A DNA stretch of 19,897 bases from Schizochytrium sp. TIO01 (taxonomy: Eukaryota > Protista > Bigyra: Labyrinthulomycetes), in contig SMSO01000028.1 in NCBI GenBank assembly GCA_004764695.1, forward strand, positions 1 to 19,897. Direction: 5' to 3'. Position 1 is the stretch's first letter, and the number at the start of each line of letters is the position of its first letter. Made by a program: the position numbers and the translations under genes. Of the stretch, positions 1,531 to 5,573 are shown piece by piece. The notes below the pieces were generated by a model, which saw only the letters and a list, made by a program, of their open reading frames with translations, was not told the origin of the DNA and made no database searches.

Positions 1531-4500
1531 TATTTGCACGGTGTTGCTTTTGTCGCTCTTGTTTTGCAAGTTTATGCAATCTCTTGTTTGTTTGTTCGGT
1601 TTGTTTGATGGATGGATGAGTTGTCTGTTTGAGTGAGTATACATCCATCGAACAAAGAGCAAAATGACACCACAACAAAGATAAATGCTGAAAGCCAACC
1701 TAGATCACTCACGGCCATGCATGCATCCAATGCAATATAATGTATTGCTTGGCAACATTCAATCAAATCGACAGTCTTTTTAGAAACCAGATCGGCGACG
1801 AGGGCGCCAAGGCAGTGGGTGCGGCGCTGAAAGAGAACCGGTCGCTGACATCACTCAAGTAAGTTGTCTACGCAACACCGCAGCTCGTGGACTTGTTTGT
1901 ACATGATGCTTGGTTTGTTGTTTGGTGGGTGGGTCGGTGTTGTTTTGGCAAGCAAGTTTATGCAATCGCTTGTTTGTTTGATGGATGGATGAGTTGTCTG
2001 TTTGAGTGAGTACACATCCATCGAACAAAGAGCAAAATGACAACACAACAAAGATAAATGGTGAAAGCCAACCTAGATCACTCACGTCCATGCATGCATG
2101 CGTGCATCTATTGTAATATGTAACGTGTAATGTATTGGTTGCCATCATTCAATCAAATCGACAGTCTTCCGTGCAACAATATCGGCTCAGAGGGCGGCAA
2201 GGCAGTGGGTGCGGCGCTGAAAGAGAACCGGTCGCTGACATCACTCAAGTAAGTTGTCTACGCAACACCGCAGCTCGTGGACTTGTTTGTACATGATGCT
2301 TGGTTTGTTGTTTGGTGGGTGGGTCGGTGTTGTTTTGCAAGTTTATGCAATCTCTTGTTTGTTTGATGGATGGATGAGTTGTCTGTTTGAGTGAGTATAC
2401 ATCCATCGAACAAAGAGCAAAATGACAACACAACAAAGATAAATGGTGAAAGCCAACCTAGATCACTCACGTCCATGCATGCATGCGTGCATCTATTGTA
2501 ATATGTAACGTGTAATGTATTGGTTGCCATCATTCAATCAAATGGACAGTCTTGCCTACAACAAAATCGGCGACGAGGGTGCCAAGGCAGTGGCTGCGGC
2601 GCTGAAAGAGAACCGGTCACTGACATCACTATCGTAAGTTGTCTACGCAACACCGCAGCTCGTGGACTTGTTTGTACATGATGCTTGGTTTGTTGTTTGG
2701 TGGGTGGGTCGGAGTTGGTTTGCAAGTTTATGCAATCGCTTGTTTGTTTGATGGATGGATGAGTTGTCTGTTTGAGTGAGTACACATCCATCGAACAAAG
2801 AGCAAAATGACAACACAACAAAGATAAATGGTGAAAGCTAACCTAGATCACTCACGTCCATGCATGCATGCGTGCATCTATTGTAATATGTAACGTGTAA
2901 TGTATTGCTTGCCATCATTCAATCAAATCGACAGTCTTCTGTGCAACAATATCGGCTCAGAGGGCGGCAAGGCAGTGGGTGCGGCGCTGAAAGAGAACCG
3001 GTCGCTGACATCACTCAAGTAAGTTGTCTACGCAACACCGCAGCTCGTGGACTTGTTTGTACATGATGCTTGGTTTGTTGTTTGGTGGGTGGGTCGGTGT
3101 TGTTTTGCAAGTTTATGCAATCTCTTGTTTGTTTGATGGATAGATGAGTTGTCTGTTCGAGTGAGTATACATCCATCGAACAAAGAGCAAAATGACAACA
3201 CAACAAAGATAAATGCTGAAAGCCAACCTAGATCACTCACGTCCATGCATGCATGCATGCATCTATTGTAATATGTAACGTGTAATGTATTGCTTGCCAT
3301 CATTCAATCAAATCGACAGTCTTGAATTCAACGAGATCGGCTCAGAGGGTGCCAAGGCAGTGGGTGCGGCGCTGAAAGAGAACCGGTCGCTGACATCACT
3401 CAAGTAAGTTGTCTACGCAACACCGCAGCTCGTGGACTTGTTTGTACATGATGCTTGGTTTGTTGTTTGGTGGGTGGGTCGGAGTTGGTTTGCAAGTTTA
3501 TGCAATCGCTTGTTTGTTTGATGGATGGATGAGTTGTCTGTTTGAGTGAGTACACATCCATCGAACAAAGAGCAAAATGACAACACAACAAAGATAAATG
3601 GTGAAAGCCAACCTAGATCACTCACGTCCATGCATGCATGCGTGCATCTATTGTAATATGTAACGTGTAATGTATTGCTTGCCATCATTCAATCAAATCG
3701 ACAGTCTTACGTGGAACCGCATCGGCGACGAGGGCGGCAAGGCAGTGGCTGCGGCGCTTAAAGAGAATCAGTCGCTGACATCACTCAGGTAAGTTGTCTA
3801 CGCAATGTGAACTTGTTTTGTGCATGATGCTTGGTTTGTTGTTTGGTGGGTGGGTCGGTGTTGTTTTGCAAGTTTATGCAATCGCTTGTTTGTTTGTTTG
3901 ATTGTTTGGTTGATGGATGGATGGATGGATGGGTTGTCTGTTTGAGTGAATATACATCCATCGAACAAAGAGCAAAATGACAACACAACAAAGATAAATG
4001 GTGAAAGCCAACCTAGATCACTCACGTCCATGCATGCATGCGTGCATCTATTGTAATATGTAACGTGTAATGTATTGCTTGCCATCATTGAATCATATCA
4101 ACAGTCTTAGTAACAACAAAATCGGCTTACAGGGCGCCAAGGCAGTGGCTGCGGCGCTGAAAGAGAACCGGTCGCTGACATCACTCAAGTAAGTTGTCTA
4201 CGCAACACCGCAGCTCGTGGACTTGTTTGTACATGATGCTTGGTTTGTTGTTTGGTGGGTGGGTCGGTGTTGGTTTGCAAGTTTATGCAATCGCTTGTTT
4301 GTTTGATGGATGGATGAGTTGTCTGTTTGAGTGAGTATACATCCATCGAACAAAGAGCAAAATGACAACACAACAAAGATAAATGGTGAAAGCTAACCTA
4401 GATCACTCACGTCCATGCATGCATGCGTGCATCTATTGTAATATGTAACGTGTAATGTATTGCTTGCCATCATTGAATCATATCAACAGTCTTAGTAACA

Positions 4501-5573
4501 ACAAAATCGGCTCAGAGGGCGCCAAGGCAGTGGCTGCGGCGCTGAAAGATAACCGGTCGCTGACATCACTCAAGTAAGTTGTCTACGCAACACCGCAGCT
4601 CGTGGACTTGTTTGTACATGATGCTTGGTTTGTTGTTTGGTGGGTGGGTCGGTGTTGTTTTGCAAGTTTATGCAATCGCTTGTTTGTTTGATGGATGGAT
4701 GAGTTGTCTGTTTGAGTGAGTATACATCCATCGAACAAAGAGCAAAATGACAACACAACAAAGATAAATGGTGAAAGCTAACCTAGATCACTCACGTCCA
4801 TGCATGCATGCGTGCATCTATTGTAATATGTAATGTGTAATGTATTGCTTGCCATCATTCAATCAAATCCACAGTCTTTCGTGGAACCATATCGGCTCAG
4901 AGGGCGCCAAGGCAGTGGCTGCGGCGCTGAAAGATAACCGGTCGCTGACATCACTATCGTAAGTTGTCTAAGCAATAGCTCGTGTACTGGTTTGTGCATG
5001 AGACTTGGTTGGTTGGTTGTGTCGTGGGTTGTCTACTGTTTTGTTTTGACGATATTTTTCTTCTCGTCATTGCAAGTTTGTTGTGGAATTTTTTGTTTGG
5101 TTGATTGTGGATGTAACAAAGAGCATGGTAATATCAAAGAATAAATGAAGCAGTACTGGCAATACTGTGGGTGCCTTTTGATGACGTGAAAATTTTAACT
5201 GACGAACGGAGTTGATGGCATTTGGTTTTTACTGATTTCTAGAATTGACCAGTTCACGGATGAAATTTGTAAGGAGCTCGAATTGAATAGGCACGTTTGT
5301 TCTGCAAAGGCAAGAAGGACAAGTCTTATACAGATATCTCGTGAGCTTCGTTGTATACATGTTGTGAACGATGCACTCTCTCTGCCGTTTCCATTGAAGC
5401 GTAGTCTTCTTACACAAGCTTGGCCTGCTAACAGCTTTTGTGAGCTGAGTTCGAAAGAGGACTATCTTTCTGCGCAGAAAGTAGAGCTTGATGGGCTGGA
5501 AGCTGCAAACGTTGCCTTTCGTGGAGCGTTGGGATGTCTAGGCCCTTATATTTTGAATAAAAATAGTTCTTAA
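1402..5573 (+). CDS. Spliced 383-aa leucine-rich-repeat protein: N-cap, 9 x 28-aa RI-like/NLRC3-like LRRs, and a 109-aa C-terminal domain
   Basis: Exons: 1402-1466, 1775-1858, 2165-2248, 2550-2633, 2935-3018, 3320-3403, 3705-3788, 4105-4188, 4490-4573, 4875-4958, 5243-5573. All 10 introns begin GTAAGT, end CAG (the last ends TAG, with branch-like ACTGAT) and are phase 2. The joined CDS is 1152 nt with no internal stop; an in-frame TAA lies upstream at 1357. Protein: MSHDPDVVYALEKLQNGATILD-LFRNQIGDEGAKAVGAALKENRSLTSLN-LPCNNIGSEGGKAVGAALKENRSLTSLN-LAYNKIGDEGAKAVAAALKENRSLTSLS-LLCNNIGSEGGKAVGAALKENRSLTSLN-LEFNEIGSEGAKAVGAALKENRSLTSLN-LTWNRIGDEGGKAVAAALKENQSLTSLS-LSNNKIGLQGAKAVAAALKENRSLTSLN-LSNNKIGSEGAKAVAAALKDNRSLTSLN-LSWNHIGSEGAKAVAAALKDNRSLTSLS-IDQFTDEICKELELNRHVCSAKARRTSLIQISRELRCIHVVNDALSLPFPLKRSLLTQAW...YILNKNSS*. 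The last exon is in frame with the listed ORF 5283..5573. Confidence 0.92.
1479..1530 (+). repeat. (GCTT)13 microsatellite in intron 1 of the LRR gene
   Basis: Perfect tetranucleotide run starting 12 nt after the first base of the intron 1 donor. Confidence 0.97.
1560..5010 (+). repeat. Tandem array of about 9 exon+intron units, period 385 bp (one 390, one 400)
   Basis: Exon starts at 1775, 2165, 2550, 2935, 3320, 3705, 4105, 4490, 4875. Intron lengths are 308, 306, 301, 301, 301, 301, 316, 301, 301 and 284 (the last is diverged). Confidence 0.98.

Follow-up and report, generated by a model that had tools for sequence, protein, structure and literature searches.

The first 19,897 nucleotides (nt) of contig SMSO01000028.1 of Schizochytrium sp. 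TIO01 (forward strand; hereafter the window) contain a leucine-rich repeat (LRR) gene at positions 1402-5573, in which nine repeat exons alternate with near-invariant introns and differ strongly at four LRR positions. The reading we favor, with a probability of roughly 0.75, is that germline diversifying selection is superimposed on concerted evolution. According to this reading, short conversion tracts, tandem duplication of units and exchange of units between loci would hold the exon scaffold and the introns at ~95% identity, and diversifying selection would act on amino-acid change at the exposed positions 5, 7, 8 and 10 of the motif LxxLxLxxNxI. New words (the 12 nt that encode positions 7 to 10, written below as four residues) would arise by ordinary point mutation, be kept, and then be shuffled among arrays. 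Because the introns have a single phase and are sited between position 5 and positions 7, 8 and 10, recombination would reassort position 5 and leave the frame intact. The variable residues would contact a ligand, and the family would probably serve in recognition or defense.

A gene with nine LRR exons

The structure of the gene is given below. An original prediction, made from the letters of the window alone, had described nine exons and quoted the codons of all of their words, and these were reproduced exactly.

1402-5573, + strand: whole gene, ATG to TAA, 383 codons in a continuous frame
1402-1466, + strand: first exon (peptide MSHDPDVVYALEKLQNGATIL-), starts with ATG and ends in GA, donor gtaagt at 1467; direct sequence reading
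1467-1774, + strand: intron 1, 3' part homologous to the repeat intron
1775-1858, + strand: LRR exon 1, word FRNQ, junction AA/T = Asn; variable bases 1779-1784, 1788-1790 and 1856-1858
2165-2248, + strand: LRR exon 2, word PCNN, junction Asn; variable bases 2169-2174, 2178-2180 and 2246-2248
2550-2633, + strand: LRR exon 3, word AYNK, junction TC/T = Ser
2935-3018, + strand: LRR exon 4, word LCNN, junction Asn
3320-3403, + strand: LRR exon 5, word EFNE, junction Asn
3705-3788, + strand: LRR exon 6, word TWNR, junction AG/T = Ser
4105-4188, + strand: LRR exon 7, word SNNK, junction Asn
4490-4573, + strand: LRR exon 8, word SNNK (as in LRR exon 7), junction Asn
4875-4958, + strand: LRR exon 9, word SWNH, junction TC/A = Ser with the last exon
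1859-2164, 2249-2549, 2634-2934 and 3019-3319, + strand: repeat introns 1-4 of eight
3404-3704, 3789-4104, 4189-4489 and 4574-4874, + strand: repeat introns 5-8 of eight
5243-5573, + strand: last exon, 109 codons plus TAA, open frame; family-specific C-terminal domain

Each 84-nt LRR exon has acag before it and gtaagt after it and reads as 1 nt, 27 codons and 2 nt. The eight repeat introns are 301-316 nt long and have one common phase: each interrupts the LRR position 5 codon between its second and third bases. An Rfam scan gave no family matches within them. The GA that ends the first exon and the T of the next exon form Asp at position 5 of the first LRR, and other arrays of the family are preceded by a version of the 22-aa peptide of the first exon that is 68-100% identical. 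Intron 1 also has a perfect (GCTT)13 microsatellite at 1479-1530.

The predicted product is a cytosolic protein of ~383 residues, with a 21-residue N-terminal cap, nine LRRs of the ribonuclease inhibitor (RI) type and a 110-residue C-terminal domain. The domain encoded by the last exon has no Pfam match. It is predicted to be helical, at low confidence, and its ratio of nonsynonymous to synonymous substitution (dN/dS) between paralogues is ~0.7-1.1. There was no Pfam match to an NTPase domain (NACHT or NB-ARC) in the first or last exon, and no ROC-COR GTPase or kinase domain was found in the gene.

Variation is concentrated at four positions in each repeat

When the assembly containing the window (64.07 Mb, 37 contigs) was searched with the 385-bp unit, at least 402 matches at 94-100% identity were found on many contigs. 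A single-exon query returned 1,052 candidate units, 40 of which were scored, and the last exon has ~98 homologous loci in the genome at 31-100% identity. We estimate from these searches that the family comprises about 100 genes with some 1,000 repeat units, whose arrays occur near contig ends and also deep within contigs. Our unit sample consists of 263 units from 40 loci, or about 1/4 of the ~1,000 candidates; removing evident segmental duplicates left 230. All 263 units have 1 nt, 27 codons and 2 nt between AG/GT borders.

In the window, codons 7, 8 and 10 (nine bases) have a mean pairwise difference of 0.636, compared with 0.064 for the remaining exon bases and 0.055 for the introns. This contrast recurs in the 230 units from 40 loci, which places it far beyond chance. 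Nucleotide diversity (pi) and the proportions of synonymous (pS) and nonsynonymous (pN) differences are as follows.

nt 5-10 (LRR positions 7 and 8): pi 0.37-0.73, 230 units
nt 14-16 (LRR position 10): pi 0.67, 0.20 and 0.61, 230 units
nt 82-84 (last 3 nt of the exon): pi 0.66, 0.68 and 0.49, 230 units
301 core intron columns: pi 0.048, 207 introns
Scaffold, synonymous, last Leu codon excluded: pS 0.05, 230 units
Scaffold, nonsynonymous: pN 0.043, 230 units

Aligning more copies genome-wide thus did not spread the variation evenly, and the central observation of the original prediction, variability confined to LRR codons against quiet introns and synonymous sites, holds across the 230 units. 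Two of its details also stood: a single base among 301 (2839, T/C) separates the introns at 2634-2934 and 3404-3704, and 9 of the first 25 nt differ between the exons that follow them. Its list of variable codons was right for positions 7, 8 and 10 and missed position 5, at the last 3 nt of the exon. The codon of this fourth site is made of the last 2 nt of one exon and the invariant first T of the next. The codons AAC (the ladder Asn, position 9) and ATC, which had been described as never changing, are indeed constant in the window; genome-wide they are found in 214 of 230 units (with 7 AAT) and in 222 of 230 units, respectively.

The variable set is L-x-x-L-[5]-L-[7]-[8]-N-[10]-I, with the intron placed inside it; it does not include LRR positions 2 and 3. 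The 230 units carry 151 distinct 12-nt words. Position 5 is N in 85 units, S in 57, D in 55, V in 14 and Y in 12, encoded by a small number of junction haplotypes (CTCAA, CTATC, CTTGA, CTATA and CTTGT) to which the silent third base of the preceding Leu codon is linked. Residues at position 8 come mostly from G, S, Y, R, W and C (23% aromatic), and those at position 10 almost exclusively from N, K, D, E, Q, Y and H, with codons nearly confined to NAN. A separate polymorphism is found at position 13 (1797-1799 and its equivalents), where TCA (133 units) and GAC (86 units) encode Ser and Asp. All three bases differ, intermediates are nearly nil, and the pair survives the homogenization of the scaffold around it.

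Selection on amino-acid change at the variable codons

Introns are homogenized together with exons in this family, and the silent sites interleaved with the variable codons provide an internal neutral control. These sites have background diversity (pi ~0.02-0.08), like the introns, and so does nt 13. At position 8, 108 two-fold codons end in C and 3 in T, and the amino-acid-changing purine is present in 39 (P = 7e-5). At position 10, NAT occurs 116 times and NAC once, compared with 88 for the amino-acid-changing NAR (P = 1e-14). Codon bias is not the cause, since Asn is consistently written AAT in position 10 but AAC in position 9. The introns have no shortage of transitions, their transition/transversion ratio kappa being 1.7-2.2.

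Pairs of words that differ by a single base include 91 nonsynonymous and 3 synonymous steps, where 19-27% synonymous steps were expected (P ~1e-7). A spanning forest of the words gave 74 and 3. The dN/dS ratio (omega) from the single-step pairs, calculated without a tree and without use of the flanks, is ~7-9. Stop codons are absent from all 263 × 27 unit codons, although base composition at the three variable codons predicts 41 of them in 230 units (P = 1e-18). Positive selection at the amino-acid level on the variable codons is supported by these comparisons, and the diversifying selection put forward in the original prediction is likewise supported by the quiet silent sites, the 91:3 single steps and the missing stops.

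A targeted diversification mechanism had been offered there as well. Hypermutation of the codons around the ladder Asn, whether germline or somatic, with selection removing only stops and misfolded products, would fit the concentration of variable bases in two tiny, sharp-edged patches and the unrelated words borne by near-identical units. It does not fit the restriction of position 10 to NAN codons or the excess of nonsynonymous single steps, nor the fact that nt 13 and the silent pyrimidine options at nt 10 and nt 16 remain at background, with only amino-acid-changing options being common. The two patches are 301 nt apart in DNA and adjoin only in mRNA. Moreover, the position 5 haplotypes CTCAA, CTATC and CTTGA, each with its linked silent base, appear to be copied and not newly made. 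Recent segmental duplicates have 0 changes at 153 variable bases, and the rest of their sequence differs by 0.14% (C30/C5) or 0.47% (C19/C31). A process acting 20-fold faster at the variable bases predicts 7.9 changes in these duplicates (P = 4e-4). A constitutive targeted mutator is thus not supported, and we consider hypermutation very unlikely.

Diversification of the kind produced by diversity-generating retroelements was considered separately and dropped. All four bases and all codon positions vary around an invariant middle codon, AAC; a template repeat or reverse transcriptase was not searched for.

Concerted evolution of scaffold and introns

The near-invariance of introns and scaffold reflects concerted evolution and not purifying selection. 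Synonymous divergence (dS) in the last exon between the window gene and eight paralogues ranges from 0 to 0.38. In the same comparisons, the between-array distance is 0.05-0.10 for introns and 0.03-0.05 for the scaffold, and the intron distance is about that seen within an array (0.055 in the window). Paralogues with a last-exon dS of up to 0.38 still have units that are 93-95% identical. The repeats, whether of one locus or of different loci, are therefore more alike than the non-repeat portions of these genes, the signature by which concerted evolution is recognized.

Some individual exchanges can be traced. The intron of unit 7 in C30 contains a tract of at least 96 nt converted from unit 4 of the same array after segmental duplication. 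Recent copies of an 11-unit array differ by multi-base swaps at junctions (CTCAA to CTATA and CTCGA to CTATC); the haplotypes swapped in are common in the unit pool, and one swap was accompanied by a scaffold change 23 nt upstream. Neighboring units have the same word in 12 of 209 pairs, compared with 0.4% of all pairs, a 14-fold enrichment. Since the introns of such neighbors differ by 1-8%, the histories of exon and intron are separate. The residue at position 5 shows no statistical dependence on those at positions 7, 8 and 10, which lie on the other side of the intron. Distances in neighboring 80-nt segments are uncorrelated (r ~0) save for one intron pair, a pattern indistinguishable from a star-like genealogy.

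Two gene copies with flanks that are only ~1% different differ at 51% of their variable bases and 6% of their scaffold bases. Whole units must therefore be exchanged with a genome-wide pool. Programmed cassette shuffling, in which identical introns of the same phase would be preserved as homology substrates for somatic or very frequent rearrangement of the arrays, would predict this result, along with the differing unit content of the same two copies. The arrangement of one repeat per exon in constant phase, with the intron inside the variable surface, agrees with such a process, as does the variation in array length (6 to 20 units in our sample, where some arrays are truncated at locus ends), and the same idea has been hypothesized for Ectocarpus LRR exons (PMC3341825). 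However, the germline genes are complete open reading frames that need no assembly step, ordinary unequal exchange in meiosis or mitosis accounts for the mosaics, and three copies of the 11-unit array preserve both unit order and every word. We therefore think programmed shuffling quite improbable.

A related proposal is that the introns are maintained as recombination substrates and that the ~1,000 LRR cassettes are reassorted often, possibly within a clone. We give it an outside chance. If it were true, a single-celled stramenopile would possess combinatorial, quasi-adaptive cytosolic sensors, directed for example against resident mirusviruses, and the intron between position 5 and positions 7, 8 and 10 would let the surface of one repeat recombine.

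Two distant relatives, P0002 (from an MMETSP transcript) and P0008 (from a 1.8-kb metagenome contig), have the C-terminal domain in common and RI-type LRRs that are mutually diverged. The extreme homogenization thus seems to be specific to the family in this genome.

Position of the variable residues in the LRR fold

In the canonical LRR motif, the beta-strand carries positions 5 and 7 between the core leucines, and the buried Asn of the ascending loop has positions 8 and 10 on either side. We examined the structural model of P0002, a distant relative with the same C-terminal domain. It is an alternating strand-helix solenoid with a pLDDT of 70-88 in its LRR part, and motif positions 4-11 lie within the strand and ladder segment ahead of each helix. 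The best Foldseek matches of this model were the LRRs of tropomodulin/leiomodin, NOD2, NLRP1 and ribonuclease inhibitor, with a probability of 1.00. By the motif and this model, the variable positions 5, 7, 8 and 10 would be ligand-facing. The hot-spot contacts Y434, D435 and Y437 of human RI presumably correspond to motif positions 7, 8 and 10.

Observations that weigh against the favored reading

Several points count against our preferred combination of diversifying selection and concerted evolution. The assignment to the concave face draws on the motif and on the secondary structure of a relative's model, not on side-chain coordinates of the protein itself. All-pairs Nei-Gojobori pN/pS in the three variable codons is only 1.2 (range 0.96-2.1), with the lowest value at position 7. 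Saturation of these codons explains the low ratio, and it also means that omega > 1 is drawn from single-step pairs and strictly silent sites, not from the likelihood of a codon model. The original prediction expected dN/dS above 1 at these codons; the single-step estimate agrees, and the all-pairs ratio, at 0.96 for position 7, was set aside as a test on account of the saturation. Selection driving change continuously at 8-25 times the neutral rate should have left some change in the recent duplicates; an omega of 8 predicts ~3 changes and none was seen (P ~0.04), so diversification may be episodic. Finally, units on different chromosomes with no more than 2 differences in 372 flanking nt differ at 3-6 of the 9 variable bases. 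Such pairs imply either conversion of the flanks around an untouched word or very fast change of the word.

In another explanation, positive selection plays no part: the variable codons are unconstrained and ancient, and conversion homogenizes the sequence between them because mismatches at the words stop the heteroduplex, leaving old words in young flanks. Conversion is active here with short tracts, the most consensus-like units have near-identical flanks around differing words, and all-pairs pN/pS within the codons is ~1, all as this explanation would have it. It also requires that silent sites inside the words be saturated, yet they are at background, and among single steps the nonsynonymous/synonymous ratio is 7-9-fold what neutrality predicts. 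Amino-acid use is constrained, with position 10 being polar and position 8 drawing mostly on the six residues named above. Words are copied too, as seen from the enrichment of adjacent repeats and from words that recur across chromosomes. We judge this explanation unlikely.

The array is a spliced gene and not a spacer

The array is a spliced LRR gene and not a spacer. LRR exons were searched singly in Pfam and the Protein Data Bank (PDB). LRR exon 6 matched Pfam LRR_6 (PF13516) at 25.2 bits, above the cut-off of 23.4; LRR exons 1 (22.3 bits) and 2 (16.6 bits) fell below it because one exon carries only part of the profile. LRR exon 2 matched RI-type LRR chains in the PDB with E values of 2e-9 to 1e-4. 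In two sequencing runs, X1 and X7, whose RNA-type label is the tool's guess, there are contigs in which the end of an exon is followed immediately by TCTT, a variable word and AAC; X1 also has a contig in which the end of an LRR exon is joined to the last exon. No exon-exon joints were listed for run X20, which is genome-sized (62.5 Mb). The four runs are contig sets fragmented at repeats. When the last exon was used as a HMMER query against 1.84 billion proteins, only 3 clusters were found, from MMETSP transcripts and small metagenome contigs. The transcript-derived proteins P0001 and P0004 match the last exon, and in P0004 (MMETSP) one LRR exon is spliced onto it.

This result differs from the published view of a repeat class that the array resembles. 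In the subtelomeres of Aurantiochytrium limacinum, Group 0 LORE-TEARS consist of ~9 units of ~385 bp that separate a 5S gene, read from the other strand, from the 18S gene of a subtelomeric 18S-28S cluster (10.1101/2023.06.15.545109). The window has this layout in unit size, copy number, strand of the 5S gene and position of the 18S gene, and the array at 1402-5573 thus matches Group 0 LORE-TEARS, in what appears to be an Aurantiochytrium-type genome. The sole published account of these repeats treats them as spacers with a possible role in chromosome-end maintenance (10.1101/2023.06.15.545109), and our literature search found no paper that treats them as genes. If the array were a non-coding spacer satellite, its open frame and likeness to LRRs would be incidental. 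Set against this are the 0 stops where 41 were expected, the matches of single exons to Pfam LRR_6 and PDB LRR chains, the canonical splice sites in constant phase, the spliced contigs and MMETSP transcript protein, and the codon-aware pattern of substitution. The first and last exons are also conserved at ~98 loci, many of them distant from chromosome ends. We regard the spacer interpretation as extremely unlikely.

The features around the gene are listed below.

823-941, - strand: 5S rRNA gene (Rfam RF00001, 96.5 bits), divergent from the LRR gene
1738-4975: 385-bp tandem repeat, 8.4 copies, 92% match (TRF)
9305-14843, + strand: complete 18S-5.8S-28S rRNA unit (Rfam), downstream of the LRR gene
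15670-16677: tandem repeat, 412 bp × 2.4, AT-rich, 3' of the 28S gene
18352-19220: tandem repeat, 363 bp × 2.4, AT-rich, 3' of the 28S gene

The 5S rRNA gene (- strand) and the start of the LRR gene at 1402 (+ strand) are 460 nt apart. Because they are divergent, a Pol III gene and a Pol II gene have a short upstream region in common at many chromosome ends. There is no further long open frame between the 5S and 18S genes. By size and place, the 412-bp and 363-bp repeats correspond to the published Group 1 and Group 2 LORE-TEARS, and the LRR motif is absent from all of their reading frames. Positions 601-5200 of the window match positions 110911-115065 of contig 13 (- strand) with 0 substitutions; across 4,155 aligned nt the only differences are 2 indel bases. 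Either a chromosome end was duplicated very recently, or one contig is redundant.

Implications

Reading the array as exon-intron units of ~100 genes would alter the annotation of every chromosome end in a model thraustochytrid. The analysis contributes five new elements: the intron-split site at position 5, controls from silent sites within the patch, an omega estimate from single steps, a test based on recent duplicates and a quantification of concerted evolution. With a variable surface of four residues per repeat, specificity could be mapped and engineered. The family is also a candidate for innate recognition in a protist with persistent mirusviruses. The arms race with viruses suggested in the original prediction is speculation.

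Comparison with known systems

The window exons resemble the LRRs of RI and of NLR proteins (LRR_6), which have a 28-residue repeat with the motif LxxLxLxxNxIGdeGakalaaaLkeN. Unlike those of the window family, RI and NLR repeats are mutually diverged and not homogenized. The window gene is not an NLR, since it has no NTPase domain.

Lamprey VLRs have an LRR scaffold with diversity at concave beta-strand and loop positions and interchangeable LRR modules. Modular repeats recur in the window family, and so would diversity at concave-face positions of the LRR, as predicted from the motif. VLR germline genes, however, are incomplete and are assembled somatically from flanking cassettes, whereas every germline gene we examined in the window family is a complete open frame. 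With a germline gene complete from ATG to TAA, the window gene is not VLR-like in mechanism.

In MHC class I and II genes, recombination and conversion homogenize the introns and selection keeps the contact codons diverse. The diversity of MHC is allelic and found at few loci, whereas that of the window family is paralogous and spread over ~1,000 repeat units. Synonymous diversity is raised near the selected codons of MHC genes, and no such rise is seen in the window family.

Among stramenopiles, the LRR-ROCO and NB-ARC-TPR genes of Ectocarpus have one repeat per exon and undergo exon shuffling, with positively selected sites on the concave LRR face and a proposed function as a recognition repertoire (PMC3341825, PMC11378527). 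The window family has in common with them one LRR per exon, constant phase and shuffling between loci. In Ectocarpus the repeats come together with ROC-COR GTPase or kinase domains, but the window gene has only a novel 110-residue C-terminal domain. Its variable surface is limited to four positions per repeat, unlike that of Ectocarpus, and the Ectocarpus repeats are far more diverged, whereas the ~1,000 units of the window family, introns included, are held at ~95% identity.

The NWD/HNWD genes of Podospora anserina (het-d, het-e) encode WD-repeat NLRs that show concerted evolution within and between loci, with about four hypervariable positions per repeat on the interaction surface under positive diversifying selection (PMC1805685, PMC4986451). 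These and the Ectocarpus genes are the nearest analogues of the window family: the Podospora genes share its mode of evolution, the Ectocarpus genes its gene architecture. Like them, the window family has near-identical repeats with few hypervariable positions under apparent diversifying selection (single steps 91:3), and repeat number varies and repeats are reshuffled among members in both. The differences lie in the repeat, which in the window family is of RI-type LRR and not WD40 and forms a separate exon with co-homogenized introns; in this gene, which is without NACHT or NB-ARC and shows no sign of RIP; and in the setting, with loci beside subtelomeric rRNA genes in a stramenopile and not a fungus. 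After filamentous fungi and brown algae, the window family would represent a third independent lineage in which proteins with recognition-type repeats have evolved by concerted evolution together with diversifying selection.

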